Positions 1 through 56,406 of a stretch of 64,000 bases of DNA are shown piece by piece. Every line of letters begins with the position of its first letter. The first letter of the stretch is position 1. The DNA is from Macrostomum lignano. Lineage: Eukaryota. The position numbers were made by a program, and so were the translations under genes. The notes below the pieces were generated by a model that ran no database searches, was not told the origin of the DNA, and worked only from the letters and a program-made list of their open reading frames with translations. The stretch covers positions 496,001 through 560,000 of the forward strand of contig NIVC01000087.1 of the NCBI GenBank assembly GCA_002269645.1, given 5' to 3'.

Positions 1-112
1 GAAGGCTATGCCCCTCTTATAAAATTGCCAACCTGGTTAATCTAATATTTAGCTAGTATAAATAAAAGCAAACTAAAGGTAAATAGCTAAATTGATAAAG
101 TTTGGTATTAAA

Positions 113-897
113 TAGTGTTGCCACCATGGTATTGGAAAAAAATTGCAGCTTTTAGAAAAAATTTGCTAGCACATTTATTGTCATTTATAGTCCAGTCATT
201 GTTTGCTAAGCAATAGAAATAGGCAATTTTTGTTTAATTCTATGACAAATAGCTGCACAGTTTGAAATTCGCTTACTACTTCTTTTTTTGACTTAAAATC
301 TGCACTTTCTAGTCTTTATAAAATAAGCATAGCATACTATATTGCATAGGCATATGCCTGGACCAATAAAAACAGTGGTATACTATAATAATAAAATTGT
401 CTTTATAATATTTGGCTTCATAAAAACTTAGCAGCACTTACTTTGCTTCTTTCTTGGCACCTTGGGTAGGGCAGCTCAAGTAGCTAATTATGTTTCTCTT
501 TTGCCAAACTGCATCTTCAGCAGTCTATTTTACTTCTCACTCAATAGCAGTGTGCTCAATCTCCATTCATCTTACTTCAAATCCAAAGGCTTGGACAGCA
601 ACATCTCTCTTTTTGTTGAGCTTGTTGCAGCTTGTCTAGGTCTCTTTGAACTTTTCACTCAGCTTGGATGCAACAAGCTTGAGCTTCCTTCTTCTTCTAT
701 TAATCTTGCTTGCTAATCAACTCAAACTGTTATAGTTTAGAACCTTGAGTAGCATCCAAATCTTATGCAAAGTCATAAATTTGAGTGATAGCATAGGCTT
801 TTTAAAAAAATTACAGCTAATAGGCTAATTCAACAAAAATTTTATTTAGCAAAGAAAATTTGCTCAGTGAAGAAAATTCACAGGGGTGGCAACACTG
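113..897. mobile_element. Non-autonomous hAT-like MITE (785 bp)
   Basis: 13-bp TIRs TAGTGTTGCCACC (113) and GGTGGCAACACTG (ends 897), flanked by an identical 8-bp direct repeat GTATTAAA (105-112 and 898-905). An 8-bp TSD is the hAT signature. No transposase ORF inside. Confidence 0.75.
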
Positions 898-3595
898 GTA
901 TTAAACAGTATTTATAAATATATATTGTCAATTATCAATAGTATTAAAGTCAGTGCAAAAGATAAAGCTGCTAATATTATAAGCATCCTGAGATAAACAT
1001 ATGGCGAAATCCAAAAACATGGGATAAAACGGTAAAACAAATCTGCGGACATTCGATGGAAAGTAATGTATCTAAAAAAGGTTTTTGAAAGATAGATAGG
1101 TCTTTAGAAAATAGTTCTGGATAAAAACTATTGTTTTCATGCTTTATATTGTTGAATAAATAAGAAAAAACCACAAAAAACATTTTGAAAATCCAAGTTG
1201 ACCGATTTGCAATTTTTTGTTTCACTTTTTTCATTATTAAACAATTAATTTTAAGACTTGTAGGCCTTAGAGAAGGCTAATTTTTTACTACTTACAAAAC
1301 AGAAAGTAATCTGTGTTTTACTTTTTATTCAATTCAAAAAGATAAAGTATTTCTAAGGATTTCAAAGTTTTTCTAAAACCATATAAACTTGCAAAAATTC
1401 ATACTAATATAAAGTGCAAAGTTTGCCAGCAAACATCTTTCTCTAAAAGTAAATATATTGCTAATTCCTTGTTGCAAAATAATCTTTAAGTTGTTTTCTT
1501 TCATTTAAATATCAACTTGCATAGTATTAGTATTTGTAATATGCCTATATTTAGACTTCAAAATTTTGGGCAAAAAATGGTACCACAAAATGTGAACCTG
1601 GCATCCAAATCAGATGCTTACTGTATGCTCATTAAGCAACGAAGAACAATGAAATTACACTAAAACATGTATCATCGCGGCGTGTATGCAGGAAAAAAAG
1701 AATTTTCCAAATCGCTTTAGTAGAAGCTGAGTAAAATGCAATTTTCCAATCCTTATGGGAATTTGTATGTTTAAATAATAAACTTACGTTGAATACAATT
1801 TATTGCAAATGAACTCTACAAAATACACGTTGTCAAGAGTAACAAAAGTGATAAACAAATAAACCCTTGAAAATAATGTTAAATATGTTGTAGAATTATA
1901 GAGTATAACATTATAAGATAGTTAAAGTTAATAAAATACATTATTATAGCTTTTCTATCATTTTCATTAGACTCATTTTAGGTCGTAATTAAACTTACTA
2001 TTTTAACAAATCATTTTATTAAAAATAAAGCTATACGAAAATAATTTGTGCTTTAATAGACTTTTTTACTTTTTAAAAACTTGAATAAATTTATTTTATA
2101 GCTTTATTGCTTTCAAATTGCCAAAAAACGAATTTTCATAAAACTTGCCCCCATTTTTGGATTTCCCCATATACTTACCATTTTTTCAATAGTTAGTTAC
2201 TACTCACTTTGGCAATGAGACATTTTGATAATAGATATTTAATTAAAGAAATTAAAGACATAAACATTTTTATAATTGTAATTATTATATTAGCAACAAA
2301 AAGACATTTTGATAAGAAGCCTATAATATTTATACTATAGTCCCAAATAGTCATACACATTATTTTTTTATTGTTTGACTATTTTTTGCTTTGCATACTA
2401 TATATGGGATAGGAAGATTAGATCAAACCTATAATATATTCACTAGCAAACTAAGGGGGAGATATGATAGAAAATAAAAGATACTGCAAAGCTAAGAAAG
2501 TCCAATGAGATATTTAACTTAATTTTGAATAGATAATAGCATATAAACAAAGAACTATATATTTATCATGTTTATCAAAATGCTTATAGCTTGTATTAGG
2601 GCCTATACTAGGCTTAACTATAATAATTTCTTTTTTAATAGTAATAAAAATACTATATGCATTTTAATATTATTATGAAAAAGGCCTACTCACTTCAAAA
2701 CTAAAAAATATCATATCATATTTCAATGCAACTATGTGGCATACTACCAATGGTTCACATTGGATCATTTATTGGTATTGGTTAATAGTAAAACATAAAA
2801 GTTTTCTATATAAATAGTAGGTCTACATAGTCCTCGTTTAAATCAATTCAGTTTGGCCAGTATAAAGAAGGCAATGAACTATTGTAACACTTCCCCTAAT
2901 ACTATCTTATCTATATTAGGCCTATTTTAATTAGAAAATGGTGGTTGTTAGAAGGAATATATTATAACTATATCATAAGCTGGGTTATGGATGACATGCT
3001 AACACAAAAATCGAGATATAGAAATAAGTAGGCCTTATTTATGGCATAAACCATAAGTATGGCTCTACATAATATGAAATGAAGCATAAATCATAATCAT
3101 ATATATATATAAACTTATTCGGCTTATCGATAAAAATGGGCTGTCTCGATTTCCCCAGGTGATTTTTTGTATCAGTATGCATCTGCATCATGAAAGCACA
3201 AAAACTTATTAGCATTTATGAATATCAGCATTGGCATTATCAGCAATTAATAAGCACATCATATTACCAGGAAGACTTTTTCTTTTTAGTAGTAGTAGAA
3301 TTAATAATTAGCTAAGGAAAGACAGCTTTGATAGGCCAATAAATACGAAAAACTGATTATTTTATTTACTGAATATTTGCAATTTATGTCACGTAAACGA
3401 ATTCATTATCTATGAAATCATTAAATTTAAGTTTGCGCGAATTTAAACACTTGTGTATAAAAAATCAAGTGCAATGAATGCAAAAAAAAAATAAAGTTGA
3501 AGCGCGGAAATAAGATTTAGTAATCAGAAAAGAAGTTTAGTATAATTTAATTAGTCGATGTAAAATGCAATGTAAGAAGTAAGTGGGAGCACGAG

Positions 3596-4130
3596 AATTG
3601 TCCGCCGAGCTTTACCCGCCGAGATTTGCCCGCCGAGAATCACCCGCCAAGATTTGCCCGCAGTGCATTTTTCCCGCGAGTGAATTGCCCGCCGATTTTT
3701 TTTCCGCCGAGGTTTGCTGCAATGCTTTTTTACAGCAGCACATTTAGTCTGATTTTGTCTGATTTTGTCTGATTTTGTCCCCCCCCCCAATGCTTAGTAA
3801 GTCTCAATAAAGAGACTTGAGGGACAAAGCTACACGGCATACACATGAATTAATAGCTCGCCGATATACCCCTACATGTATATTGAACTGAATACCTACA
3901 AGAAAAATGCATCTGATATGCTGAATTACTACCAAAACACTTTGATCGGGTAAATCTCTTTATTAAGACAATTACTAAGCGTTAATAGGGGAATAATGCA
4001 GACAAAATCTGCCGCGTGGCTAAATGCGATGCAGGAAAAAAACATTGCAGGCAAACCTCGGCGGGAAAAACTCGGCGGGCGAATCTCGACGGGCGAATTT
4101 CGACGGGCATGGACCCAAAAAGACGTGTAG
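3596..4130. mobile_element. Foldback/MITE-like element with inverted arms built from CCCGCCGAG-type subrepeats
   Basis: About 3640-3780 (TTCCGCCGAGGTTTGCTGCAATG...CATTTAG...GATTTTGTCTG) is an imperfect reverse complement of about 3995-4125. Both arms carry tandem ~13-bp subrepeats. Termini and TSD not resolved. Confidence 0.5.
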
Positions 4131-6603: not shown

Positions 6604-6700
6604 ACTGCATATAGAGCAAAGCAATCTGCTCTAGCGGCAAGTTCAAATTCAAATTTTGTGGCGAATTTTGTGCCAACGGAAAAGCGCACTAAAGAAGAAA

Positions 6701-9610
6701 ATGACAAAAGAGTCCGGCTCTCCGATAGACGAAGAGAAGCCAAGGACGCCGGGCTCCAGACAGGGGTCGGCTAAATCTGGAAAGAGCGCCCGAAGCGAAG
6801 GTGCTCGCAGCGACAAGTCCGCAGCGAAGAGCGACCGATCTGCTGGGGCAAAAAGCGACAAGTCTGCGGCCGCAAAGAGCGTCAAGTCCGCGCCCAGGTC
6901 AACTAGGTCCGCCAAGTCGCCCAAGGAATCAGCTGAAGGTCAGCGCGAAGAAGAGGCGCGCTCTCCGGGCGCTCCAGCAGCTGAGGACGAGACCAAGGAG
7001 CTACATGAGCCACCAGAAGATGAAGATGCAGGAGCTGAGAGGGCTGAAGGATCTGAGGACAGGCATCAGCATGAAGCGGAAGGAGGCCTGGAGGCTATCG
7101 ACGAGGAGGCCATTCGCGATGAAGTCGAAGCTCTGAACAAAGAGTTGGACAACATTCAGATCAGTGTGCCTACCTTCAATGAGTTTGTTCAGCACGAAAC
7201 AGAGTTTCGGTTCAAAGAGTTTCCAGTAAGTTATCACGAGAACACTGTCACTGAGGACATTGTTCTGTCGTATGCCGCCAATTTCCGCCGTCAGTACTCT
7301 CACCTCGAGAAAGATCGTAAGCCGCTATTTCTAAACCCCCTAAATGAATGCAACGTTGAGAAGTTCGTCTGCACAACGCTGAATCCCACAAAGTTGCCGT
7401 ATAGAGAACTGTACGATTGGCACGGAGCGGCGAGCTTCGTAGCAGACTATCTCAATTACGTACTGCTAGACCCACCGACTGAACTGCCGGAGCGAATGTT
7501 TTCTCCGGCCACAACGCTGGAGATTCAAAAAGGGCACTGCTTTGAGTACTCGCAGTTGCTCTGCTCTCTGCTTCTCGGCTGCGGCTACGATGCCTACGTG
7601 GTTAGTGGCTACGCTACCAGAGAGATCTGCATGATGGACGAATCGCGCGACACTTGCCCAGAGCTGCAGAAAAAGGAGGAAGCTAAGCGCGAAGACACGG
7701 CAGTTGAGCAGAAAAAGTACACAGTGAAACCGCCGAAGGACTTGCGTAGTCAGTTTATACTCAACATGGAGGCTCGCAAAGTGAGGGAAGAGCAGGAGCG
7801 CGAAGAGGAGCGGAGAAAGGAAGCGGTTCGTCGTGAGCTTGAAGCGGAGCGGCCAGCCAATGACCCACTGTACGGTCTGCGAGTTCATTCTTGGGTTCTC
7901 GTGCTTGCTGGAAAGCGCGAAGTACCCGAGGGCTTCTTCATCGAGCCACTCACTGGCGTGGCCAGGCCACTGGTCAACGATGACTACTGCGGCATCGAGA
8001 GCCTCTGGAATCACAAGAACTACTACGTCAATATGCAAAGCTGCCGTGAAGGAGTGCGGAAGCTTAGCTACGACCTTGGCGACTGTACACTGTGGGAGTT
8101 CATGTTTCCCAGCAACGAAAAGCCGCTTTACCTGCTGCCTGAGGTCAAGGAGAATCGCGACGATGAGGAAGGCGACGAAGACAATGAAAGGGCTGAAGAC
8201 ATTGAGAGGCACTTGGACATGCCAAAGACTTGGACAAAGCCAATCGTCCTGTCGCGGCGAGATTTCGAGACCCGATGCCCGCATGGAAAGAAAACTAAAC
8301 TCTACAAGAAGGCAAAGCTGGAGAAGTTCGCACCGTACTTACTTCGAGACGGCATGGTGCTGCGGCTATCAATTTACACGGACAGAACGCTTTCTGACCT
8401 TGTTGAGGTCCGGGAGCACTTTGAGAACCGGGTGGATAAGCTGACCTTGCGCGTCAGGGATGTGGCCAGCGGCAAGGTAACTGAACACTTTGCCAAAGGA
8501 CGAATGGAAAGGCTGCATGAGCACCAGTACTTCGAGGCCATGCCAGGTCCGGAAACCGAGCGGGTCATGTTTTTCTACAATGAGGCTCGCGTGGACTGCC
8601 TGGCTCGCAGAGAGGAATGGCCTCTGGAGATGAAGGAGTACTTCGTCAATCGTCCTGATCGGCTGTACTTTCGACACACGGTATTTTCGAAGCGCGTGAA
8701 AAAGTTTGCTCCCCAAAGCGCCCCCGGTGAACACGAGGTGCGTCCGATCAGCAGAATCGAGGAGAAGTTCGCTCGCAATCCGAATGTCCCGGCCAACGAG
8801 GATGTTGCTGAGCGAATGTTCGTACTGACAGAGGACCGCATTCAGCTGGTGTACCATACCGACTCCAGCAAGATCGCGGCCAGCACTCGCGAGTATATAA
8901 AGCCACCAAATGCTGACGAGAAAGGCACCGTGATTGTTCTACCGCCAGATAATCACAGCACCTTTCAGGTGGACCCGAATAGGTCAAGCAAAAAGGAAGT
9001 TGAAGTCTACCAGCTCATGCTGGACCTTATCGCGATCGAGGAGAAAACCAAGGAGCGCGTACGGGCCTCGGAGAAAGAGTCTCTCGATATTCTCAATGCC
9101 CGATCGCGGGAGGAGGCCGACGCGGAGATGGAAATCAGCCTGTACGACACGGAGAGGAACGAGAAGGCGAAGAAGCACCGCGAAGAGCTGGAGCGCCAGC
9201 GCCAGGAGGAACTGATGCGCAACCGCGAGCTGGAACTGGACTACTTGGCGCCGTTCCTTGCTCAGCTGGGCGAGCCAACCAAGATCACCAAAGAGATCGC
9301 GTTCGAGCTGCGCAAGGTCTGTCTGGAGGACTTCAAGCACCGCCTTATTGACAAGGCCAATCTCATCCAGAGCCGCTTCGAGAGGCAGAGCGCGGACCTG
9401 CAGAAGAAGCAGAGCTGGTACCAGCAGAATCAAGTTAACATGTCGAAGAACGATGAAGAGGAGTACCTGAAGTACTGCAGCGAGGCTATGTTCAAAATTC
9501 AGATCCTTGAGGAGATGCTGCAGCGACACAAGAATATGGCGCCGCACAAATTCCAAGCGCTGGAACTGAAGCTGCGGACCGATCCCAGGCTGCAGGAGTT
9601 CTTGAATTAG
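6701..9610 (+). CDS. DRC7: Dynein regulatory complex subunit 7 (CCDC135), intronless, about 969 aa
   Basis: 984-aa ORF; first ATG at 6701 (MTKESGSP). Contains FLNPLNECNVEKFVCTTL, a transglutaminase-like core (GHCFEYSQLLCSLLLGCGYDAYVVSGYA), RVHSWVLVLAGKREVPE...FIEP, GIESLWNHKNYYVNMQ and a C-terminal coiled coil ending DPRL. Confidence 0.93.
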   Translation: MTKESGSPIDEEKPRTPGSRQGSAKSGKSARSEGARSDKSAAKSDRSAGAKSDKSAAAKSVKSAPRSTRSAKSPKESAEGQREEEARSPGAPAAEDETKELHEPPEDEDAGAERAEGSEDRHQHEAEGGLEAIDEEAIRDEVEALNKELDNIQISVPTFNEFVQHETEFRFKEFPVSYHENTVTEDIVLSYAANFRRQYSHLEKDRKPLFLNPLNECNVEKFVCTTLNPTKLPYRELYDWHGAASFVADYLNYVLLDPPTELPERMFSPATTLEIQKGHCFEYSQLLCSLLLGCGYDAYVVSGYATREICMMDESRDTCPELQKKEEAKREDTAVEQKKYTVKPPKDLRSQFILNMEARKVREEQEREEERRKEAVRRELEAERPANDPLYGLRVHSWVLVLAGKREVPEGFFIEPLTGVARPLVNDDYCGIESLWNHKNYYVNMQSCREGVRKLSYDLGDCTLWEFMFPSNEKPLYLLPEVKENRDDEEGDEDNERAEDIERHLDMPKTWTKPIVLSRRDFETRCPHGKKTKLYKKAKLEKFAPYLLRDGMVLRLSIYTDRTLSDLVEVREHFENRVDKLTLRVRDVASGKVTEHFAKGRMERLHEHQYFEAMPGPETERVMFFYNEARVDCLARREEWPLEMKEYFVNRPDRLYFRHTVFSKRVKKFAPQSAPGEHEVRPISRIEEKFARNPNVPANEDVAERMFVLTEDRIQLVYHTDSSKIAASTREYIKPPNADEKGTVIVLPPDNHSTFQVDPNRSSKKEVEVYQLMLDLIAIEEKTKERVRASEKESLDILNARSREEADAEMEISLYDTERNEKAKKHREELERQRQEELMRNRELELDYLAPFLAQLGEPTKITKEIAFELRKVCLEDFKHRLIDKANLIQSRFERQSADLQKKQSWYQQNQVNMSKNDEEEYLKYCSEAMFKIQILEEMLQRHKNMAPHKFQALELKLRTDPRLQEFLN

Positions 9611-10250: not shown

Positions 10251-10962
<712 letters not shown>

Positions 10963-11761: not shown

Positions 11762-13217
11762 ATGGGCGCGTCCTTGTCAGCTTATTTGGCCCCTTGTCGG
11801 GTGCTGCTTCTCGGGCTGGACAACTGCGGCAAGACCACCCTGCTGAGGCAGCTAGTTGCCAGGCACACCTCCGCAGCTGGCGGGACGGGTTCGTCAAAAA
11901 CAATGTCGGCTTTGGCGACGGCGTCAGACGAAGACGAAGCGGCGGCGATGTCGGCAGCGGCGGAGGCCAGCGATACGCGTCGAGTTCTGCCAACTCTCGG
12001 CCACTCGTCCGAGATTGTCCGGCTGCCGCAGGGTGGCCCCGATCTGGTGCTTACAGAGGTAGACTATGGATCAGGGAGATGATCAGGGAGGTGATCAGGG
12101 AGATGATCAGGGAGATGATCAGGGAGATGATCAGGGAGATTATCAGGGAGATGATCAGGGAGATTATCAGGGAGATGATCAGGGCGATGATCAGGGAGAT
12201 TATCAGGGAGATGATCAGGGAGATTATCAGGGAGATGATCAGGGCGATGATCAGGGAGATTATCAGGGAGATGATCAGGGAGATGATCAGGGAGATGATC
12301 AGGGAGATGATCAGGGAGATGATCAGGGAGATTATCAGGGAGATGATCAGGGAGATTATCAGGGAGATGATCAGGGCGATGATCAGGGAGATTATCAGGG
12401 AGATGATCAGGGAGATTATCAGGGAGATGATCAGGGCGATGATCAGGGAGATTATCAGGGAGATGATCAGGGAGATGATCAGGGAGATGATCAGGGAGAT
12501 TATCAGGGAGATGATCAGGGCGATGATCAGGGAGATGATCAGGGAGGTGATCAGGGAGGTGATCAGGGAGATGATCAGGGAGATGATCAGGGAGATGATC
12601 AGGGAGATGATCAGAGAGATTATCAGGGAGATGATCAGGGAGATGATCAGGGAGATTATCAGGGAGATGATCAGGGAGATGATCAGGGAGATTATCAGGG
12701 CGATGATCAGGGCGATGATCAGGGAGATTATCAGGGAGGTGATCAGGGAGATGATCAGGAAGATGATCAGGGAGATTATCAGGGAGATGATCAGGGCGAT
12801 GATCAGGGAAATGATCAGGGAGATGATCATGAGACGAGTTCCTGCCCTCAGGTCGGTGGCAGTAGGGTCTACCGCGACTTCTGGCGCTACCACGCACGCC
12901 TAGTCGAAGGCGTCGTATTCGTCGTCGACAGCAACGATCCGGCTAGGCTGGAGGAGGCCCGCCGCTTCCTGTTCGAGGTGGCCACCAGCTGGGAGCTGCT
13001 CGGCGCCCCCGTGCTGGTGTTGGCAAACAAGCAGGACCTGCCGTTCGCTCTGCCCGGCTGGCAGGTGGCGGCCCGGCTGCAGACCGAGCTGCTGGAGCGG
13101 CTGGGCCATCCGACTCACGTCCACCGGACCGTGGGCCTCACTGGGGACGGCCTGGTGACGGCGCTGCACGTCCTGGCAAAGTTCATCAGGCAGAGGAGAC
13201 GCTCGCCGCCCTGTTGA
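11762..13217 (+). CDS. ARF-like (ARL) small GTPase, 2 exons (11762-12058 and 12852-13217), about 220 aa
   Basis: MGASLS myristoylation-type start and P-loop LLLGLDNCGKTT. Splicing GAG|GTAGAC...CCCTCAG|GTC is phase 0 and rebuilds LTE-VGGS (the DxxG position), followed by RDFW, VVFVVDS.D..RL.EAR and LVLANKQDL (G4). Subfamily not assignable by eye. Confidence 0.85.
12066..12830. repeat. 12-bp minisatellite (GATCAGGGAGAT and variants) filling the ARL intron 12059-12851
   Basis: About 63 tandem 12-mers with point variants (TAT/GAT, GAG/GCG, GAT/GGT). It starts 7 bp after the donor and ends about 20 bp before the acceptor. Confidence 0.95.
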
Positions 13218-13313: not shown

Positions 13314-15168
13314 CGTGACAGGCTCGATTGGGTCCGGCTATGGAGTGTGACAGGCTCGATTGGGTTGGTTATGGAGTTTGACAGGCTCGATTGGGTTGGT
13401 TCTGGAGTGTGACAGGCTCGATTGGGTCCGGTTCTGGAGTGTGACAGGCTCGATTGGGTCCAGATATGGAGAGTGACAGGCTCGATTGGGTCCAGATATG
13501 GAGTGTGACAGGCTCGATTGGGTTGGTTATGGAGTGTGACAGGCTCGATTGGGTTGGTTATGGAGTGTGACAGCCTCGATTGGGTCCGGTTATGGAGTGT
13601 GACAGGCTCGATTGGGTCCGGTTGTGGAGTGTGACAGGCTCGATTGGGTCCGGTTCTGGAGTGTGACAGGCTCGATTGGGTCCGGTTATGGAGTGTGACA
13701 GGCTCGATTGGGTACGGTTATGGAGTGTGACAGGCTCGATTGGGTCCGGTTGTGGAGTGTGACAGGCTCGATTGGGTCCGGTTCTGGGGTGTGACAGGCT
13801 CGATTGGGTCCGGTTATGGAGTGTGACAGGCTCGATTGGGTCCGGTTATGGAGTGTGACAGGCTCGATTGGGTTGGTTATGGAGTGTGACAGGCTCGATT
13901 GGGTCCAGATATGGAGTGTGACAGGCTCGATTGGGTACGGTTATGGAGTGTGACAGGCTCGATTGGGTCCGGTTGTGGAGTGTGACAGGCTCGATTGGGT
14001 CCGGTTCTGGGTGTGACAGGCTCGATTGGGTACGGTTATGGAGTGTGACAGGCTCGATTGGGTCCGGTTATGGAGTGTGACAGGCTCGATTGGGTCCGGT
14101 TCTGGGGTGTGACAGGCTCGATTGGGTCCGGTTCTGGAGTGTGACAGGCTCGATTGGGTCCGGTTATGGAGTGTGACAGGCTCGATTGGGTCCGGTTCTG
14201 GAGTGTGACAGGCTCGATTGGGTCCAGATATGGAGAGTGACAGGCTCGATTGGGTCCAGATATGGAGTGTGACAGGCTCGATTGGGTTGGTTATGGAGTG
14301 TGACAGGCTCGATTGGGTTGGTTATGGAGTGTGACAGGCTCGATTGGGTCCGGTTATGGAGTGTGACAGGCTCGATTGGGTCCGGTTGTGGAGTGTGACA
14401 GGCTCGATTGGGTCCGGTTCTGGAGTGTGACAGGCTCGATTGGGTCCGGTTATGGAGTGTGACAGGCTCGATTGGGTACGGTTATGGAGTGTGACAGGCT
14501 CGATTGGGTCCGGTTGTGGAGTGTGACAGGCTCGATTGGGTCCGGTTCTGGGGTGTGACAGGCTCGATTGGGTCCGGTTATGGAGTGTGACAGGCTCGAT
14601 TGGGTCCGGTTATGGAGTGTGACAGGCTCGATTGGGTTGGTTATGGAGTGTGACAGGCTCGATTGGGTCCAGATATGGAGTGTGACAGGCTCGATTGGGT
14701 ACGGTTATGGAGTGTGACAGGCTCGATTGGGTCCGGTTGTGGAGTGTGACAGGCTCGATTGGGTCCGGTTCTGGGGTGTGACAGGCTCGATTGGGTACGG
14801 TTATGGAGTGTGACAGGCTCGATTGGGTCCGGTTATGGAGTGTGACAGGCTCGATTGGGTCCGGTTCTGGGGTGTGACAGGCTCGATTGGGTCCGGTTCT
14901 GGAGTGTGACAGGCTCGATTGGGTCCGGTTATGGAGTGTGACAGGCTCGATTGGGTTGGTTATGGAGTGTGACAGGCTCGATTGGGTCCAGATATGGAGT
15001 GTGACAGGCTCGATTGGGTCCAGATATGGAGTGTGACAGGCTCGATTGGGTTGGTTATGGAGTGTGACAGGCTCGATTGGGTTGGTTATGGAGTGTGACA
15101 GGCTCGATTGGGTCCGGTTATGGAGTGTGACAGGCTCGATTGGGTCCGGTTATGGAGTGTGACAGGCT
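13314..15168. repeat. 31-32-bp minisatellite GTGTGACAGGCTCGATTGGGTCCGGTTATGGA, about 58 copies
   Basis: Contiguous tandem copies; variation is confined to a short window of the unit. Confidence 0.96.
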
Positions 15169-16527: not shown

Positions 16528-18363
16528 ATGCGGAACTTGGCGCAGAGCCTGGACTTCTTCGCCATTAATCTGTGCTTTACAGTTGGCCATTTTGACATCT
16601 TCAAGTTCCCACTGAGCTCAAACGGGCTGGGCGGCGCCACCTTTGTTGGAGTCTACGCCGCCGTCATGCTCCTGTACGGCATTCCGGCATTCGCCGACGA
16701 GGTCGCCTACCTCATGCCGTGGGACTGCGGCTCTTGCAGCCCGGCTACGCGGAAGTGGCTTCGCAGCTACGAGCTCATCGCCCTGATGCAAGCTATTCAA
16801 GTTTCTATTGGCGAGGCCGAGGAGAAGCTCAACTTGGCTACTGCTCAGCTATTCACTCTGGCTAACTCTGGCTCAAATAGTCTTCGAATGCTCCCATTTT
16901 ATTCGAAAAACTGTCAGCTACTGGACACCTCCATGACTATCGGACGAGTATCGGACGAAAACACGCTGGAGATGCTGGTGCAGCCTTCTTGCATGAGACG
17001 GCCTCGAAACGAGATCGGCTGCCTAATGCAGCTGCTGTTTGCGAATCCCAATGCAGTCCTATTCTACACTTTTATTATGCTTTCGCTAGTAGTAATTTCC
17101 TACTTTATTATATTTGGCCGTTCAATGCGAACCTACGGAAAAATCGGTGGGATCTACATAGCACTGGTTGTGCTGTGCATTGCCACTCTGCTGCTCCACT
17201 TTGTTGGGAAGAGCAGGACGGAAGTTGGCGCGCACGATACCAGCTCAGCGCTCGCCACAATGGAAACTACGTTCGCCGGCGCGCTCGTGCTCTGCATGCA
17301 CAGTCTCGGCCTGGCCAACTTTCAAATTAGCGCCATTGGCGGCCGAGCCAATCAGGATGCAAAGCGGAGTTACGTGTCCCTGAGTATCTGCGTCTGCCTT
17401 GCTGACTTGGCGATTTCTGTCGCCTTCACCGGTCTGAGTCACCTAGTCAAATATTCTGTCGTCAAGCTCTGCAACGAATCTAGCGGAGGCCAATTCGACT
17501 TTGACAGCTACATGTCGTTTCCCGACATGACCGATAAGCTGAGAAACGGCAGCCTCAGTACCCCAGTTTCCGTGTCGGTAATGCAGGGCGCGATGCAGCT
17601 GGCCGAGTCGGTGCTGATGTTCTACGAGACTAGCGGCTTTGTACCATACACCGTTTTCTTACCTTTTAAGGTTGTATTTTCTGGGGGGGGGGCTTTTGTT
17701 GTGCCATTAAATTGGTTAAATCACACACATTCATTCGCCATCTAAATGATCTTTTCAGGGAATAATCCTGATGTTCAGCGTATTTCTGATTTGCATTCAA
17801 TTCGTCATAAGCGACCTGCAGGCGATCAGACTGTTCCGCTGTTCGTGGGCAGTGCTCAGCCTGGCGGCGGTGCGGTTTGTCCTGCTGGCTGGAGTCACCC
17901 TGCTCAGAATGTTCGGCCAGCTGACCAGACTGCCCAGGTACATGCTGCTCGGCGCACCTATCGCTTTCTTTCTGGTAAAGCTTTTCGAGTGCGTTACGAT
18001 TCACCTCGGCCAGGTGGGTGTCGCGATAGGCTTGGATAAAAATGTGGCTCATAAGCAGTTCTTTGCTTCGATAATAAATTTATCCCATTTCAACTCCGTA
18101 TCAAAAAGGGGTTCTCAAGCTACATCCAGGATCGCCGGACTCTTCTGAACGAGAAGCAAACGGTGCCGCTGTTCATCTTCAACTGGTACCTGGCGCCAAG
18201 CATGGTATTCCTGTACAACTTCGGCTACCCGGCTGCTTGTGTGGTGTTTATCATCACGTACCAAAAGGAAATGTTAACAATTGGATTCTGCGTCTGCTTC
18301 CTGCTGCTAAACGCTTTGCCAATTGTTCTCACCATTGTAGTTGTGCAAGTCTATTGGACCTGA
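16528..18363 (+). CDS. Highly divergent SLC6 (sodium:neurotransmitter symporter)-like membrane protein, 3 exons (16528-~17640, 17822-18013, 18130-18363), about 510 aa
   Basis: TM1/TM2 read TVGHFDIFKFP...GGATFVGVY...YGIPAFADE, versus SLC6 AVGLGNxWRFP...GGAFLIPY...GxPLFxxE. Later segments YGKIGGIY and LCMHSLGLA match the GK and FSLG positions. Intron 18014-18129 (CAG|GTGGG...TCCAG|GAT) is phase 0 and in frame. The first donor is ambiguous (17578, 17641 or 17671, all phase 0). Confidence 0.62.
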
Positions 18364-18800: not shown

Positions 18801-21800
18801 AGAAAAATATTCAATTTTGAGGCGGACAAAGGCATATTTTAATTGGTTTAATTACTTTATCAAGTTGTTGCTTATTTTTTAATAATTTTTTGTTATCTTT
18901 TATTTGTTTTTTGTTGTTTTATTTGATTTTTGAGGTTGCAATTTGTTTTATACAGGGAAATGTGTTTTGGTATGCTTTTGTGGCCTCGCTCTTATCCTCA
19001 GGATTTTGCAATCTAGCGATCATGTTATTTAGCTCTTTGCTTTCAATTTTTCAATGTGTAAGATCCGACAAAAGTTCTTGCGGTTTAGAGTACGTAGCTT
19101 TTTAGTTTTCATTCTGCTTTGTTTTTTTGATACAAAAGATTTACTTCCAAGACAGAGTTCTTATAGAAAATGCCAAGAAAATAAAAAGCTAGAAAGCCGT
19201 CGGAAATGCCAAAAACAAAGGAATGATTTTTATAGGGGGAGAATAGAGGTGACCGACGGGGAACTAACGCGTCTGTCTTGCCAAAGCTCCCGGAGCAAGC
19301 GACAACATAAATTCTGGGCCATGCAGTGTACGGGAGTTTACCGGGATATTGTTGGGACCAGCTGCTTGCCTCCTAGATAGCTGCGGCTCGCCCGAATTTG
19401 CTAAAGCGCCAAGAAGTTCTCTCCGACTAACTAAAAGAAGAGCCACCAGTTGATGTTGTTCTGCAGCTCTATTAGTCAGCACTGTGATGGAATACACTGC
19501 CACAAATTCGGCTAGTATAGCCCGAGTTGAATGACACGCGCAGGTCAGAACACACGTCCTTGAGGCAACCCTAAGCCCTAGCAGCTATTCTATATGTGAG
19601 CGAGGTAGCAAGGAAAAGAAGGACGGGCACTGGTGAGCAAGTGGCAGGAAATGAGCTGGGATAGAATCGAACGCCGCTCCAACAATTGAATTAGAGTCGC
19701 TGCGGGTGGGATTATAGAGCTCCGCTATGGGTGATGAGCTTGCCAGAAGTTCGGCCCGGTGCCGCGCGCCAAGACTCCAGATTTATATTCGTCAACTTTT
19801 CTTCTCTTACGCAAAACCTGATTCGATTTTCAATGAGCGGCCCAGACTGCCGCATAGTTTTCTTATCTCTTTCGCTCTAGCTGTTCCATGTATTTCCTTT
19901 AGCTCGTAGATCTCTACCCCAGCGCGTGACTGGTTAGTGACGAATCCAGTGCTTCTTTATTGATGGGATGTCGCGCTGGCGTCACTGTGATATCCTTAGT
20001 ATCTTTTACGCTATCCAATCATCTTTATATATATTTTTTCCTAACTCTGTGACGTCAATGTTTCTCTCCGTATGCCGAGATGTCTTCTGAATTTAGTAAA
20101 AAGAATTTGATACGTTCTGCTCACTGAGGAGCAACGTAAGCTTATAAAGCAAAGAGCGATTTTGCATTTTAATTCATTTTTTCGAACTTATTACATATGA
20201 CTGTTACATCAATATACTAGAACTTCTAGATCCATGAAGCGGGAGAAAGTGACTAAGGTTCTTATAGCGTTAAGATTCCACCAAATTTCATGCAGACTAG
20301 CGAGGATTCCAAGCTAAACAGCGCAAGAACACGCGCCGAGAGTCTGTTTCCACTAACGTACTCTTGGGTCGTTGTTGAAGTATAAAATTTTGTGCAACTT
20401 CAATACGAGCAGCTCAAATAGCGTGCGCTTCTGATCTGCCTGCCTTTCTTCAAATTCTCCTCGATTGCCCAGCTGTTGGATTAGCTGTGGAGATATCCAC
20501 TTCTCATTTGCTCCACTCCATTTCACCTCGCCAATAATTCACTTTCATTGGCGTTCCATGGCAATACTCCGTCGCTTCTCGTCAAGTGTTCTTTGCACAG
20601 TGGACAGGCAGGAGAGAAAAAGAAGGCTAGCTTCCTCAAGTCCGCCGAACCACTGAATTTTTAGTCCAACTTTATATAAGAAAAGCACTTTAATAATCGC
20701 TTCACGTATACGACATGGGGCCTATATATCAGAATAGCAGCGTCTGTGGATAGAAGATTTGATAAAGAATATTTGCCCAGAAAGGTTTACACCTATCTGA
20801 AAGCGTGCTGAGTTTCGGCTGCTGAGAACTAAACTATGAAGGTAAGCACAACAAGCTGGTCAGTTGGGGGCATGATTTAATATTTTGTGAAAATATCGGC
20901 AGCAGTAGCCAAAAAGAAGGTGCAACAGGTTCCGGATCAGCCAGCGACTCTGTGTGCTAGCTGAGCCACTGGGGGTGTTTGATCCTAAGATTCCACTTAG
21001 GCAACTTAGGAGTGGCTTGTTTTATAAAGATAAGTGTGCCTTAGCTGGGAACCAACTTAGGTGTAACCAAGAGTGAGAAAAGACTGAACTTATGGCTGAG
21101 GCACAGATTCTATATTACCTAGATGTGTCTCTGCAGCATTGTCGACTGATTTTCCATGCAAGAATGGCATTCTCGCACTCTTTTGCGTGCAGGAATGGAT
21201 GTCTATGGTAAAATCTCACTGAAAAAGCATTAGGCGCAGAAATGCATTCCTGCACGGTTTTGTGCATTCCTGCACGATGAATCATCCGACAATGGGATTC
21301 CTTCACGTTCACTCGTGCGTGAAGGACATCGTGCACTCGTGACCGTGCAGGAATATATCATTCGCTAGTGTATTTAGCGGCCGTCTCCGAGGCACCGAAA
21401 ACCCCGGGGTTAGGGCCATAGACACTGGCTGCTGCTAATGTCTTGAGAGCAGCAGAAGCTACAGTCTATGGTCAAAACCCACAAAACAGCTTGTTGTTCG
21501 GCTGGAGAGACCCATCTAAGGGTAATATAAATCTGTGGGTCGCTCTTCCTTAGGCGGAGACCTGAAAAAACTCAAGGGGGACAAAGCGCATTTCGCCAAA
21601 ATGCAGAGCCACCTTCTGCGCCCCTCTCTTGGGTCTTTACCCTCCATAATCCGCCCCCCTCAACAAATTTCTGGTTGCACCACTGATAGAACACACTCAT
21701 GACTGAGTCCTTAGTTTGAACTTAAGTTGAAACTTAAGAGTCAGTCTTAAGACAGTTTTCGAAACAACCCTCAGGCACATAAACATAAAATTAGGCTATT

Positions 21801-22025
21801 TTCTATGCTGCATCTTTCACAACAAAAAATTTTCGCATCCTATCGGCTAAGAAGTTAAGTGTGAAGTTTTTTATTATTTAGAGTCCATCCAAACTCCAGT
21901 ATACTTTGGTAACCTTGAGTATATCCAGTTAAATTTCGGAAGCCAATACCGTAAGCGCGCGGCACTCGAGCAAATGTAGGTGAAGTTTATTTAAAACGTT
22001 ATTAAAGAATTATTTGATTTTTCAG

Positions 22026-22715
22026 TTCCAGATTCTACTATTAGAGTGGCAGCTTCCACTTCTGCTTCTGCTCCTGCTAGCCTGCTCAAGCAGCCTCGCC
22101 TGTTCGTCATCTCAAAGGAAAGCGGACAAGTCCGGCAGCAGTTGCTCCGCCGCCGTGGCCTCAGCCGCCGCGCACGCTTCAATCGAGTGCAATCCGTTTG
22201 AGCGGCCGGCACTGAACTGCAGCGGCGCTGGGGCGGCCTGCCGAGGCTACAAATGCATCTGCTCGGATGGCGGCCATGTCTACGTCGCCGGACGGGGTTG
22301 TCGCGACGTTGACGAGTGCCGCGAACTGCCGCAACCCTGCAAAGGCACCGGCGTCAGCTGTTTAAATGTCAAAGGCGGCTACCAGTGCATCTGCGACGCC
22401 GAAGGTCATCAATACCATCCGTTCAAGGGATGCGGCACTCACAATACGTGCCACTTCCCGTTCAAGTACAAGGGCACTTTTTATCACCACTGCATCCGGT
22501 CACAGCACCACCGACTGTGGTGCAGCCGTACTGCCGATTACGACAAAGACAAAAAGTTTATCAACTGCGCGGCCGAGTTTGTCAGCCTGCACTGCCACTT
22601 CCCGTTCAAGTTCAAGGGCCGCGAGTACAAATCGTGCATTGGAACAGGCAACGAGAAATGGTGCGCCACGACGTACAATTACGATCTGGACAGGCGCTGG
22701 GACATCTGCTATTAG
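22026..22715 (+). CDS. Small secreted protein: signal peptide, EGF-like, calcium-binding EGF, two fibronectin type II domains; start codon not in this exon
   Basis: Hydrophobic LPLLLLLLLACSSSLA; cbEGF DVDEC...C...CLNVKGGYQCIC; FN2 repeats CHFPFKYKG..Y..C....RLWCSRTADYDKD...INC and CHFPFKFKG..Y..C...KWCATTYNYDLD..W.IC; stop at 22715. The listed ORF start is a TTG inside a pyrimidine tract. Acceptor TTTTTCAG ends at 22025. Confidence 0.85.
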   Translation, partial: FQILLLEWQLPLLLLLLLACSSSLACSSSQRKADKSGSSCSAAVASAAAHASIECNPFERPALNCSGAGAACRGYKCICSDGGHVYVAGRGCRDVDECRELPQPCKGTGVSCLNVKGGYQCICDAEGHQYHPFKGCGTHNTCHFPFKYKGTFYHHCIRSQHHRLWCSRTADYDKDKKFINCAAEFVSLHCHFPFKFKGREYKSCIGTGNEKWCATTYNYDLDRRWDICY

Positions 22716-23600
22716 TAACTCTGAGTCACTCCAGGTGCAAGGAGAGTGAAATCCACCATGACATTTTCTATGCTATTGTCAGACAACAAAAAATTTGAAT
22801 GAGCAGTATGAAATCACTTTTATCTTATTTTTAATCGGTATCTTTGATCAAAGTTTGAAGGCAAATTTCAAGGGAAAGAGGGGCGTGGTTTGGTATTACT
22901 AACTGTTGACCATTGTGTCGGTGTTGGTGCTTTTATTTTTGTTAATTACACACTACTATCAGTAGTCAGTTTCAATTGAATCCGACTACAAATAATTTTC
23001 AAATTGTCGACATGGATGCAAAAATTTATTGACTTTCATTTTTTTGGACATACAATGACAACAGCAAAATACGCTGTCACTCAGTTATTACGTCGTACAG
23101 AGAGCCTGGTCTCGGGTGTAGGCGTCGACGCAGGTAGAAGGCCAGTGCATGACTGGCTGCACCTTCAAGACCGGAGACGAGCGAGTTTCAAACGCGACAC
23201 TGCATCGTTGCGCCAGCCCCATCTGTCCAAACGAATTGTTGCCAGGCCAAATCAGTTGCGCCGAGTTGTACTGCCTGCAGATGGTGCACAACCTTACCGA
23301 CGAAAACAGGCCCGCACTCGGCGTTTCGTCGACTGCCTTCCGGCCGATGCCGGTGCCCCAGATACGGTCGCTTAGGCGCTGGGGCGCACCCTGTGCTGCT
23401 ACTTTTCCTTGAGACCCTAACTGATGCTGTTGTCGTTGTGTTGTTTTTTTTTTCATTTTCGTTGTTGTTGTTGTTGTCGTGCGTGTGTGCGTTCTGCAGA
23501 CGTTGCTTCATCGGACCCACGGACAACGGGGTGTTCCGGTCGAAAGAAAACTTCATACCATTTTCGCTCACCTGCAACACTCCAACTAGTTCCCAGTGAG

Positions 23601-27665: not shown

Positions 27666-27754
27666 TTGTTTTTTGTTGTTGTTATTTTTGTTGTTGTTGT
27701 GTTTGTGTTGTTGTTATTGTTGTTGTCGTTGTTATTGTTGCTGTTATTGTTGTT

Positions 27755-27793
<39 letters not shown>

Positions 27794-27985
27794 TTTGATG
27801 TTGTTGTTGCTATTGTTGTTGTTTTTGATGTTTTTGTTATTGTTATTGTTGTTGTTGTTGTTGTTGCTGCTGCTGTTGTTATTGTTGTTGTTGTTGTTGT
27901 TGTTGTTATTGTTGTTGTTGCTTTTGTTTTTGTTGTTTTTGTTTTTGTTGTTGTTTTTGTTGTTGTTGTTGTTGTTGTTGTTGTT
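27666..27985. repeat. (TTG)n microsatellite, imperfect
   Basis: Read directly; it explains the poly-V/L/N ORFs in the track. Confidence 0.97.
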
Positions 27986-28949
27986 ATGAATCAGCCTCCA
28001 AGCAATCAAAAAATGTATTTGCCGTTTAAGTGCTAAAAAACTTCTATTCATTCACGTCTATAAATAAATTTTAATAAATTGAAGTCAAACCAGAGCTGGA
28101 CAGAGACAGAGCAGGTAGTTATGAGAATAATCAATCCCTCTGTCAGTCCAGGAAAAGCCCTAAGCAACCCCACTCTCTCATCGGCTTAAATCAAGCTCTA
28201 TGGATCTCGAATTTCCCGACAAAAAATTTATCTTCTTGCCCCTAGCTACCGGGCAAGCTTTCTCTAGAGAGGCCGCAACTGGCGCAGGTGAAGAGATAAG
28301 TTTTGGTGCGGATTTTCGAATTTAATTCGAAGAAATGATGAAGAAGGAGCCGCCTGGCCAGCGAGAAGAAGGATTTGTCCGACGGGGCGCAGAGAGGAAG
28401 AGGAGAGGAGATTATCTCGGCGCCCTCCCGCCGGAGATGGCATCGAGGTGTTTGGGGATCCGCGGGAGTCGGCAGCAGCGAGTCAGCTGAGAGGAGGCGG
28501 CTTTAGCAACAGCAGCATCTGAGGATTATCGAATTATCCTCGCCTGTCCACTTCTCATCTTTCCTACTCCCTCTCCCCCTCCCGCCGTCTCCAGCAAGGG
28601 TGTTGTCGCCTTCTCAATGCCACCCCAGACTCCGCACTAGATATCCTTAAAATTGAAATCCGATAGAGCCTGCTCTTGAGTAGTCGGGTTTGCTGTAGAC
28701 GAAATTGGTTTTACCAGCGATACCAAGCGAACGTAGCCAGCCGGGTCTCCTCTGGACAAAATTAAATCTGTTAACTTTATGGACGGCCCCACAACAAGTC
28801 AATGCTGGTACTGTAGGATAACTGATACTGATTGACACTCGGTACCTTGGCATGGCTAAAAACCACATTTTAACTATCTACAACGAATGGGAACAAATTT
28901 CAAAACTGATAAATTGATTGTGGGATCAGATATTTTACACTGACATCAC

Positions 28950-30062
28950 CTGTTAGACAGAGGCATCACCTGTTAGACAGAGGCATCACCTGTTAGACAG
29001 AGACATCACCTGTTAGACAGTGGTAGCACCTGTTAGATAGCGGCAGCACCTGTTAGACAGTGGCATCATCTGTTAGACAGAGGCATCACCTGTTAGACAG
29101 TGGCAGCACCTGTTAGTCAGTGGCATCACCTGTTAGATAGCGGCAGCACCTGTTAGACAGTGGCAGCACCTGTTAGACAGTGGCATCACCTGTTAGATAG
29201 CGGCAGCATCTGTTAGACAGTGGCATCACCTGTTAGACAGCGGCATTACCTGTTAGACAGTGGCATCATCTGTTAGACAGCGGCATTACCTGTTAGACAG
29301 TGGCAGCACCTGTTAGTCAGTGGCATCACCTGTTAGTCAGTGGCAGCACCTGTTAGACAGTGGCATCACCTGTTAGTCAGTGGCATCACCTGTTAGATAG
29401 CGGCAGCATCTGTTAGACAGTGGCACCATCTGTTAGACAGTGGCATCATCTGTTAGACAGTGGCATCATCTGTTAGACAGTGGCATCGTCTGTTAGACAG
29501 TGGCATCACTTGTTAGACAATAGCATAATTCTGTTAGACAGTGGCATCATTCTGTTAGACAGAGGCAACACTTGTTAAAACAGTGGCACCATCTGTTAGA
29601 CAGTGGCACCATCTGTTAGACAGTGGCACCATCTGTTAGACAGTGGCACCATCTGTTAGACAGTAGCATCATTCTGTTAGACAGTGGCATCACTTGTTAG
29701 ACAGTAGCATCATTCTGTTAGACAGTGGCATCACTTGTTAGACAGTAGCATCATCTGTTAGACAGTAGCATCATCTGTTAGACAGTGGCATCATTCTGTT
29801 AGACAGTGGCATCATTCTGTTAGACAGAGGCATCATTCTGTTAGACAGAGGCATCATTCTGTTAGACAGTGGCATCATTCTGTTAGACAGTGGCATCATT
29901 CTGTTAGACAGTGGCATCATTCTGTTAGACAGTGGCATCATTCTGTTAGACAGTGGCATCATTCTGTTAGACAGTGGCATCATTCTGTTAGACAGTGGCA
30001 TCATTCTGTTAGACAGTGGCATCATTCTGTTAGACAAAAGCATCACTTGTTAGAACAGTGGC
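28950..30062. repeat. 20-21-bp minisatellite (CATCACCTGTTAGACAGTGG grading to CATCATTCTGTTAGACAGTGG)
   Basis: About 54 tandem copies; the unit changes from 20 bp (left) to 21 bp (right). Confidence 0.95.
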
Positions 30063-30693
30063 AGTGTAGCAAATTCACTAAAAATATTAAAAAAGGAGAC
30101 TCGATGGCCAGAGAGAAGCAGTGCAGCGAGGAACATTCACCTACTCTCTCTCCCCCTATGTATTTTGAATGGCAGAAAGAAAACGCTTTCCCATTGGCTG
30201 CAGCCATGTAACAGGAGAAATTGCCAGGCGTAGTGTTACACTCCTATTGCCCACAATGGGCCCAGAAAGGCACCAATAGGAAGAATTGGCTTGGATTTGG
30301 CACGCTAATACTAGGAGCTTCTGGAGCTTACAGCTTGCTCCTCTTCTAGCTACAAGCGACAGCAAATGGGCAGCATGTCACTCTGAAGCTCGACAGCAAG
30401 CCTCAGAAAAAGATGCAGCTCCTGCTCCTATTGCTGCTTCTGGTGCTAGCGCCGCTGGAATTGGCGCAAGTAGCGGCAACTCAAACAGCTGGCGAGGACA
30501 GCAAGGGCGGCAACTGCTTCTCCATCCGACAGGGTGGCAGGGTTCGCTACAGCCTGCCGGCATTCAACGGCACCAAGTGAGAATGGCTGGCTGTCTCCTG
30601 TCTCAACGTTCTTCTATCCGTATTTAAAATAAAGTCGCTAAGGTCCTTCTTACCTTCTTACCTAGAGTGACTAGAATCTAGTGACTAGAGTGA

Positions 30694-31810
30694 TAGAATC
30701 TGTGGCTGGAGTGACGCATCTAGGTAATATAGAATCTGTGGCTGGAGTGACACACTAGGTAATATAGAATCTGTGGCTGGAGTGACACACTAGGTAATAT
30801 AGAATCTGTGGCTGGAGTGACACACTAGGTTAAATAGAATCTGTGGCTGGAGTGACACACTAGGTAATATAGAATCTGTGGCTGGAGTGACACACTAGGT
30901 AATATAGAATCTGTGGCTGGAGTGACACACTAGGTAATATAGAATCTGTGGCTGGAGTGACACATCTAGGTAATATAGAATCTGTGGCTGGAGTGACACA
31001 TCTATAGGCAATATGGAATCTGTGGCTGGAGTGACACATCAAGGTAATATAGAATCTGTGGCTGGAGTGACACATCTAGGTAATATAGAATCTGTGACTG
31101 GAGTGACACATCTATAGGTAGTATAGAATCTGTGGCTGGAGTGACACATCTATAGGTAGTATAGAATCTGTGGCTGGAGTGACACATCTATAGGTAGTAT
31201 AGAATCTGTGGCTGGAGTGACACATCTATAGGTAGTATAGAATCTGTGGCTGGAGTGACACATCTATAGGTAGTATAGAATCTGTGGCTGGAGTGACACA
31301 TCTATAGGTAGTATAGAATCTGTGGCTGGAGTGACACATCTAGGTAATATAGAATCTGTGGCTGGAGTGACACATCTATAGGTAGTATAGAATCTGTGGC
31401 TGGAGTGACACATCTATAGGTAGTATAGAATCTGTGGCTGGAGTGACACATCTATAGGTAGTATAGAATCTGTGGCTGGAGTGACACATCTATAGGTAGT
31501 ATAGAATCTGTGGCTGGAGTGACACATCTATAGGTAGTATAGAATCTGTGGCTGGAGTGACACATCTATAGGTAATATAGAATCTGTGGCTGGAGTGACA
31601 CATCTATAGGTAGTATAGAATCTGTGGCTGGAGTGACACATCTATAGGTAATATAGAATCTGTGGCTGGAGTGACACATCTATAGGTAGTATAGAATCTG
31701 TGGCTGGAGTGACACATCTATAGGTAGTATAGAATCTGTGGCTGGAGTGACACATCTATAGGTAGTATAGAATCTGTGGCTGGAGTGACAAATCTACGAG
31801 CATAGGTAGT
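30694..31810. repeat. 35-38-bp minisatellite GAATCTGTGGCTGGAGTGACACATCT(AT)AGGTA(A/G)TATA, about 30 copies
   Basis: Tandem copies, with 35-36-bp variants on the left and 38-bp variants on the right. Confidence 0.95.
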
Positions 31811-56142: not shown

Positions 56143-56179
<37 letters not shown>

Positions 56180-56406
56180 TTCATTTTTAGTATATCTGAC
56201 TGATAGATATATATATATACATATAGTTTTCTTTTTTTAGTATATTTAATTTTTGGCATACATTTTAGGGAAATTTTTGTTTTTGGCATGCATTAGCATA
56301 TATTTAGCTGAGATAGGATACTTGTTTCAGCAGCCTCATACTATTATACAATCCAGTCCCTGGTTATCTGCTAATAATAGAGGTCTATTATACAATTTGA
56401 AAAAAC

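Follow-up and report, generated by a model that had tools for sequence, protein, structure and literature searches.

Spliced leaders (SLs) of flatworms all end in ATG, and an AUG supplied by the SL has been known to serve flatworm mRNAs since 2006, so that the mechanism itself is not new. In Schistosoma mansoni, over 40 cDNAs depend on the SL AUG, according to the work of Cheng, Cohen, Ndegwa & Davis (2006, J Biol Chem 281:733) as it is cited in PMC9851317, PMC12582326, and PMC5832876. Macrostomum lignano, a free-living macrostomorph, has a single 35-nt SL, CGGTCTCTTACTGCGAAGACTCAATTTATTGCATG, which also ends in ATG (3′ end …TTATTGCATG). About 30–39% of its genes are trans-spliced, with [T/C]TNCAG as the top trans-acceptor motif. 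In Macrostomum, the ATG at the end of the SL has been remarked on as a likely start codon (PMC10468722), whereas gene-by-gene documentation of SL-AUG use in this species was not found. Flatworm acceptors are often common to cis- and SL trans-splicing, and long first introns can act as outrons (PMC12582326; PMC5832876). A published splicing rule holds that a donor upstream in the same transcript converts the outron to an intron.

The locus analyzed here lies in 64,000 nucleotides of contig NIVC01000087.1 (positions 496,001 to 560,000; hereafter the window, whose numbering is used throughout, with all features of the gene on the + strand). In contig numbering, the locus falls at approximately 516,700–518,900. 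The original prediction, made from the letters alone, took the host to be a flatworm and proposed that a secreted FN2/EGF protein encoded there receives its start codon from the SL. The host is indeed a flatworm, M. lignano (assembly Mlig_3_7, GCA_002269645.1), and the two general premises of the proposal, that flatworm SLs end in AUG and that this AUG acts as an initiator in Schistosoma, agree with the M. lignano SL sequence and with the literature. The locus has in common with the SL-AUG mRNAs of S. mansoni a flatworm SL ending in AUG, a main ORF without its own AUG, and a phase-0 acceptor. It differs from them in possessing a candidate in-phase cis ATG exon upstream, and trans-splicing at this locus is hypothetical. 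No SL RNA gene was found in the window.

A coding exon for an EGF/FN2 protein without a methionine codon

The ORF ends with TAG 22713–22715, and its frame is open back to TGA 21981–21983, i.e., from 21984. As the original prediction had stated, there is no in-frame ATG: none occurs in the 244 codons of this frame, and the encoded protein contains no Met. The nearest upstream ATG, at 21974, is directly followed by TAG, again as described. It and the six other ATGs present in 21900–22720 (at 22253, 22267, 22276, 22366, 22430, and 22658) are all out of frame. Position 22014, from which the gene had been counted, is an in-frame TTG picked by a mechanical ORF finder; it is followed by ATT, so that the two codons occupy 22014–22019. 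The main coding exon (22026–22715) comprises 229 codons and TAG, with a GC3 of 0.71 for the ORF versus a GC content of 0.35–0.44 in the flanks. The intact-looking coding exon of a secreted protein without a Met codon is real.

The encoded protein agrees with the domain composition claimed for it. Its N-terminus, FQILLLEWQLPLLLLLLLACSSSLA (22026–22100), is signal-peptide-like, with a maximum hydropathy of 3.06 (Kyte–Doolittle, 10-residue window), and cleavage is predicted after SLA (Ala25) by the −3/−1 rule rather than by a dedicated predictor. After the signal peptide come a Ser/Ala-rich linker, one six-Cys EGF-like module, one calcium-binding EGF domain, and two FN2 domains, with 22 Cys in total. 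The EGF-like module (C55–C92; 22188–22301), whose boundaries were taken from the Cys pattern, was aligned with the paralog described below and with LDL-receptor EGF pairs. The calcium-binding EGF domain (22305–22433) scores 32.3 bits against PF07645 (EGF_CA), above the gathering cut-off of 27, and displays the D-x-D/N-E-C start of this family (DVDEC, residues 94–98). The two FN2 domains (22449–22568, within direct repeat D1, and 22593–22709, residues 190–228) score 96.5 bits against PF00040, for which the Pfam gathering cut-off is 22.2, and show the four-Cys pattern and conserved aromatic residues of the family. The first matches the FN2 modules of MMP-2, MMP-9, fibronectin, and PDC-109, and the pair aligned to the structures 1eak/1ck7 (MMP-2, E = 1e-25), 1l6j (MMP-9), 1e88 (fibronectin), and 1h8p (PDC-109).

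A tandem FN2 pair is common to this protein, MMP-2 and MMP-9, the gelatin-binding domain of fibronectin, BSP/PDC-109, and ELSPBP1. The BSP proteins are also small and secreted and end in two FN2 domains, as does the present protein judging from its sequence features. Sperm-binding proteins of the BSP/ELSPBP1 type are expressed in the male tract and bind choline phospholipids. In the MMPs and fibronectin, the pair is set in a protease or fibronectin type I context, whereas the present protein has neither and carries EGF and calcium-binding EGF modules in front instead. The likeness to the MMP, fibronectin, BSP, and ELSPBP1 proteins is at the domain level and is not orthology. By domain homology, the FN2 pair may enable the mature protein to bind ligands of the collagen/gelatin or phosphorylcholine type.

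Two acceptor-like hexamers, TTTCAG/22026 and TTCCAG/22032 (a slash marks a splice site), lie in tandem at 22020–22031, and they are, as the original prediction described, both in phase 0. The first ends at 22025 and the second at 22031, and complete ORF codons start right after each (site 22026, TTCCAGATTC; site 22032, ATTCTACTAT). Both match [T/C]TNCAG, which occurs at 2.3 per kb on one strand. An in-frame [T/C]TNCAG is a Phe or Leu codon followed by the Gln codon CAG, and the hexamers here are the codons for Phe-Gln-Phe-Gln. The same in-frame motif is found in the signal-peptide codons of the paralog Mlig027412.g1 (two copies, both CTG-CAG) and in those of the paralog's ortholog in another Macrostomum transcriptome (one copy, TTC-CAG). 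The hexamers therefore weigh little by themselves, and their occurrence in phase 0 is no more than chance. The anomaly that needs an explanation is the missing start codon alone.

A single-exon paralog with a genomic start codon

An exhaustive phmmer search of 1.84 billion representatives found a single full-length relative, BOX15_Mlig027412g1 of M. lignano itself (254 aa, 40% identity), and no relative closer than this paralog. Residues 4–228 of the query align to residues 8–250 of the paralog, and the signal peptides of the two proteins are aligned from the first of these pairs (query residue 4, paralog residue 8). The two share the same architecture from end to end (signal peptide, EGF-like, calcium-binding EGF, and two FN2 domains), in a short gene with a compact CDS. 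The FN2 domains of the query are closer to their Pfam and PDB relatives than is the second FN2 domain of the paralog. The other relatives are domain-level matches, namely vertebrate MMP-9-like, fibronectin-like, and ELSPBP1-like multi-FN2 proteins. An exact look-up of the ORF product returned nothing, and a word-indexed search of 5.8 billion clusters returned one FN2 match only, to a fish MMP-9. Neither the RNA-seq-based GenBank annotation (Mlig_3_7) nor a collection of about 15 billion proteins has an entry for the gene. The literature, searched for the paralog ID, and the supplementary tables of Wudarski 2017, inspected for scaf87 or FN2, yielded nothing.

The paralog gene Mlig027412.g1 consists of a single exon and is present in three near-identical genomic copies. 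Its genomic ATG adjoins the signal-peptide codons (cttgATGTTTCGC) and is preceded, at a distance of 73–86 nt, by a TATA-like box. The paralog thus has a genomic ATG, a basic n-region (RRR), four Met, and an annotation with transcript evidence, whereas the query has no Met and is unannotated. A MAFFT alignment placed tttgATTTTTCAG of the query against the start region of the paralog, such that ATT 22017–22019 aligns with the paralog's genomic ATG (TTGATTTTTC here, TTGATGTTTC in the paralog). The 10-mers at the start position match at 9 of 10 nt (local alignment over a 30-nt window, p about 0.03), and further upstream the 5′ flank of the query has no significant homology to the paralog. ATT 22017–22019 is possibly a relic of an ancestral in-exon start codon, for which the match is weak evidence.

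Origin of the start codon

In the 8 kb upstream of the ORF, candidate exons were sought in which an in-phase ATG runs without a stop into a GT[AG]AG donor. The scan yielded two candidates. The farther one, at 19022 (MLFSSLLSIFQC/GTAAGA, intron of 2,968 nt), is unlikely: it lies within a TM-like ORF and lacks a promoter signal, and the signal peptide that it would give is over-long. The nearer one, ATG-AAG/GTAAGCA at 20836–20848, lies in a unique region with no repeat. A candidate TATA box, TATATAT (20723–20729), is located 113 nt before this ATG, a spacing similar to that in the paralog, and would place the transcription start site at about 20753–20760. The candidate exon 1 would then span 20755–20841, its 5′ boundary being set from the TATA box, with an ATG-free 5′UTR of about 80 nt, ATG at 20836–20838, and AAG at 20839–20841. 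An in-frame TAA (20830–20832) lies two codons before the ATG, whose context is aaactATGa (A at −3 and A at +4).

The candidate intron (20842–22025) would run from the donor AAG/GTAAGC to the acceptor TTGATTTTTCAG/. Its length of 1,184 nt is close to the species mean of about 1.1 kb, its donor fits the M. lignano motif GT[G/A]AG, and its acceptor fits CAG and [T/C]TNCAG. The donor is in phase 0 to 22026. Joining 20841 to 22026 gives an open frame with no stop, MKFQILLLEWQLPLLLLLLLACSSSLA… (MKFQILLL…), and the predicted product begins MKFQILLLEWQLPLLLLLLLA. The predicted junction is AACTATGAAG/TTCCAGATT for site 22026 and /ATTCTACTA for the alternative site; with a longer stretch of the exon-1 end, the former reads GAACTAAACTATGAAG/TTCCAGATT. 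An upstream cis-spliced ATG exon was what the original prediction had proposed to look for as a check on itself. A phase-0 candidate was found, with the sequence features of a canonical two-exon gene (promoter element, leader free of upstream ATGs, ATG in good context, consensus donor and acceptor, compatible phases, and open frame).

We consider it about an even chance (a probability of roughly 0.5) that the start codon comes from this small upstream ATG-AAG exon by ordinary cis-splicing, in an unannotated two-exon gene. A transcript driven by the TATA box at 20723 would have an ATG-free leader of about 80 nt, which would end in aaactATG-AAG (20836–20841) and carry the start codon in a 5′ mini-exon. 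Cis-splicing would take the donor AAG/GTAAGC across the repeat-bearing intron of 1,184 nt to the acceptor at 22025/22026 or else, likewise in phase 0, to TTCCAG/22032. The product would be MK-FQILLLEWQLPLLLLLLLACSSSLA/…, whose signal peptide would be of the classical type, with a positive n-region, a core rich in Leu, and small residues at the cleavage site. We infer the use of the promoter, exon, and splice from the sequence. Cis-splicing is favored over trans-splicing at 22026 because a strong donor upstream in the same transcript turns the outron into an intron. Occasional in-frame SL addition at the acceptor 22025 would be compatible with the cis-spliced gene, since flatworm acceptors are often common to the two kinds of splicing.

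On both strands of the window (128 kb), there are 17 sites at which an ATG is followed within 12 codons by a donor. Three of the 17 have a TATA box 60–160 nt upstream, and one of these three, the 20836 site, is also free of upstream ATGs. We put the chance that the scanned region contains such a TATA/ATG/donor composite at roughly 1–3%, an estimate of our own that was made post hoc. We further took as rough priors that short first coding exons occur in a few percent of genes, that dependence on the SL AUG occurs in about 1%, and that pseudogenes with start loss as their only lesion account for less than 1%.

Several observations count against the cis-spliced gene. The gene is unannotated, although the annotation keeps 5′-partial CDSs, such as P0002, which starts with Val at 6641, and the DRC7 homeolog BOX15_Mlig015216g1. 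In the full-length homolog Mlig027412.g1, ATG and signal peptide adjoin within a single exon, and the aligned ATT of the query hints at an ancestral in-exon start. In addition, the candidate exon 1 and the 5′ flank have no significant homology to the promoter and 5′UTR of the paralog or to the L005 transcript leader. TATA-like heptamers are common in the window (91 per strand), and the composite was found post hoc.

The first alternative is that the locus is a start-less decaying duplicate. Such a copy would have been a single-exon gene like the paralog and would recently have lost its ATG at about 22014–22019 (ATG to ATT or ATG to TTG). Its promoter may also be decayed, it would be untranslated, and its ORF would be intact only because too little time has elapsed; the signals resembling acceptors and an exon 1 would be coincidences. 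This would account for the lack of an entry in an RNA-based annotation that retains 5′-partial CDSs, and for the paralog's ATG facing ATT within a 9/10-nt match. In the alignment, the counterpart of the paralog's TATA-like box is a degraded TAAATTTCGG of the query, and the n-region of the query lacks the Arg residues of the paralog and carries Glu. The surroundings are a satellite-rich stretch, in which no gene is annotated between 9.6 and at least 19.6 kb. Differences of 1–7% separate the homeologs in this hidden-polyploid assembly, which would leave time enough for one null mutation without further damage to the ORF.

Against decay stand the 229 intact codons, the presence of all 22 Cys and of the FN2 and EGF consensus residues, the GC3 of 0.71, and the fit of the query's FN2 domains to their Pfam and PDB relatives, which is better than that of the paralog's second FN2 domain. 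The missing in-exon ATG is the sole candidate disabling lesion in the gene, and by our estimate, the loss of a start codon accounts for about 5% of the possible null mutations and would have to be the sole first lesion. The homology at the start codon is weak, and the in-phase TATA/ATG/donor composite would be left as a coincidence of 1–3%. We regard a decaying duplicate as a doubtful explanation, but one that retains an appreciable chance.

The reading of the original prediction, an SL-supplied AUG, is possible and is not the best supported. The SL with its terminal AUG would be trans-spliced to TTTCAG/22026 or TTCCAG/22032 and provide the sole initiator, giving M-FQILLL… or M-ILLL…. The pre-mRNA would start upstream and leave the cis donor unused, the candidate intron becoming the 3′ part of the outron, and the signal peptide, hence secretion, would depend on trans-splicing. 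As had been claimed, an SL joined at either site would be in frame with the ORF and meet no intervening stop. The history of such a gene is plausible: once ATG-TTT-CAG/ served as an SL acceptor, the in-exon ATG, now ATT 22017, would have become redundant, and its loss by a G-to-T change would also have lengthened the pyrimidine tract.

This reading draws on the host and its SL, on the 30–39% of genes that are trans-spliced, on the twofold match to [T/C]TNCAG, and on the established SL-AUG initiation in S. mansoni. The resulting signal peptide of 26 residues has a normal length, the N-terminus MFQ… is similar to MFR… of the paralog, and the single-exon structure of the paralog speaks against an old upstream coding exon. 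On the other side, the hexamers are Phe-Gln codons with counterparts in the signal-peptide codons of the paralog and its ortholog, and upstream lies a strong cis donor, in phase and accompanied by an ATG and a TATA box. A second donor-like sequence, GTGAAGT, lies 46 nt before the acceptor, and upstream donors disfavor trans-splicing. The searchable collections contain no SL-joined transcript or protein of the locus, and the base rate of SL-AUG-dependent genes is low. It is thus rather unlikely that the gene has lost the in-exon ATG kept by its paralog and is now wholly dependent on the SL AUG, with secretory entry switched on by trans-splicing. The same low standing applies to a variant in which one acceptor is joined to the cis ATG-AAG exon in some transcripts and to the SL in others, each supplying its own in-phase initiator, and two signal-peptide isoforms result. 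Given the shared acceptors of flatworms, the 22025 acceptor could take the cis donor 20842 or the SL, which is hypothetical here.

The donor-like GTGAAGT (GT at 21980–21981) directly follows the ATG-TAG noted above, the whole spanning 21974–21986, and could define a 46-nt mini-intron to the 22025 acceptor. A phase and stop scan ruled out this arrangement as a source of the start codon by its in-frame TAG, which leaves no usable start.

UUG and AUU are weak initiators. Non-AUG initiation at TTG 22014 or ATT 22017, or an assembly base error or strain variant at the start codon, is very unlikely: each codon is one step from ATG at the position where the paralog's Met aligns, but T at −3 makes for a poor Kozak context, and polished assemblies seldom contain substitution errors.

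Significance and genomic surroundings

Returning to the cis-spliced two-exon gene, the locus is most likely a conventionally spliced gene that encodes a secreted EGF/FN2 protein and lacks an annotation, and the finding is probably ordinary. If the mini-exon is used, the locus marks a gap in the annotation, a small secreted FN2/EGF gene having been missed in Mlig_3_7. In a trans-splicing species, a large exon without ATG would then count as evidence for an SL AUG only once upstream mini-exons have been ruled out. If the AUG instead comes from the SL, the locus would be a clean, testable addition to a known mechanism, with a paralog that keeps the ancestral genomic ATG, and transgenesis in M. 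lignano would let the SL-donated AUG and the signal peptide be examined directly. Should the SL be the only source, the gene would represent an evolutionarily polarized, gene-level case of ‘start-codon outsourcing’ in a free-living, transgenesis-capable flatworm. Under either explanation, annotation pipelines that trim the SL's terminal ATG, or keep it, can usefully be checked against the locus.

There is no annotated or recognizable gene within 10 kb of the ORF, no recognizable coding ORF at 24–33 kb, and no second FN2 copy in the window. Downstream polyadenylation signals were uninformative, as the query has no canonical hexamer and the paralog has only the variants TATAAA and AATATA. The starts of GenBank CDSs were considered as marks of SL sites (P0002, G 6641), and this use was dropped, since in the homeolog the CDS begins in another frame, 14 nt farther upstream. 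The neighboring DRC7 ORF is 100% identical to a database protein from NIVC01000087.1. Its homeolog, BOX15_Mlig015216g1, is flagged as partial and is encoded on scaffold NIVC01001130.1; the stretch of this homeologous locus that was compared aligns to the window up to about 19.1 kb, about 1.7 kb short of the candidate exon.

Repeats are found on both sides of the main exon. An imperfect direct repeat of 37 nt has its upstream copy at 21798–21832 (+) and its other copy at 22763–22796, just past the stop codon (84% identity, E = 0.04). Its reading as the mark of a retrocopy or as a target-site duplication was rejected, as no poly(A) precedes the 3′ copy. Within the candidate intron, a MITE-like insert (21099–21538) lies between inverted single copies of the 38-nt satellite unit of 30693–31796.

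Repeats within and around the FN2 gene

Several repeats were found in and near the ATG-less ORF for the EGF/FN2 secreted protein (22026–22715, plus strand). The candidate intron preceding its main exon (20842–22025) contains a 440-bp MITE-like piece bearing single, inverted units of the 38-nt satellite at both ends (21099–21137, minus strand, and 21500–21538, plus strand), and a 33-nt palindrome is located at 21696–21751. In addition, the ORF lies between the two copies of a direct repeat (37 nt, imperfect, 84% identity), with one copy approximately 190 nt upstream of the acceptor (21798–21832) and the other 48 nt downstream of the stop codon (22763–22796). This repeat was considered as the target-site duplication of a retrocopy and was rejected, as poly(A) is absent.

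Tandem arrays and base composition

The 10–32 kb stretch is satellite-rich and gene-poor because it contains six long arrays of tandem repeats, whose units measure 4 nt (10252–10926), 12 nt (12069–12829), 32 nt (13315–15168), 3 nt (27673–27985), 20 nt (28944–30063), and 38 nt (30693–31796). Since the 12-mer array encodes the approximately 250 N-terminal residues of the "Arf-like" ORF (12066–13217), this N-terminus is probably not genuine coding sequence. The base composition changes sharply inside the one scaffold: the GC content is 26–30% at the window ends (1–4000 and 56000–64000), whereas that of the middle is 40–56%.

Annotation of DRC7 and of the paralog locus

DRC7 is intronless, consisting of a single 984-codon ORF (6641–9610; positions 10001–12985 of L006, the homeologous locus from scaffold NIVC01001130.1). 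The GenBank CDS begins at GTT, 20 codons before the ATG at 6701 that is the likely start. A 1-nt indel in the homeolog shifts these 20 codons into a different frame; the annotated N-terminal extension is thus 5'UTR read as protein. Two of the three genomic copies of the paralog Mlig027412.g1 (L003 and L004) lie antisense within a large gene with DCX/PLAT domains; in the third (L002), the host gene is not annotated, and the annotation is thus inconsistent across the homeologous copies.

Other ORFs of the window

Three successive ORFs, the first of 405 codons, precede the FN2 gene (16528–18363, plus strand) and carry multi-pass membrane-like segments. They have neither a Pfam match nor a GenBank gene call, and therefore may represent a decayed transporter-like gene. 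An ATG-initiated ORF of 1,140 codons (46433–49855, minus strand), rich in Ser, Thr, Gln, and Ala and containing FxF/FG-like repeats, gave no Pfam match; it might encode a low-complexity protein, for example one of FG-nucleoporin-like type. The ORF at 51979–52962 (plus strand) carries a DUF3504 domain (E = 8e-20), which is typical of derivatives of Crypton-type tyrosine-recombinase transposons.
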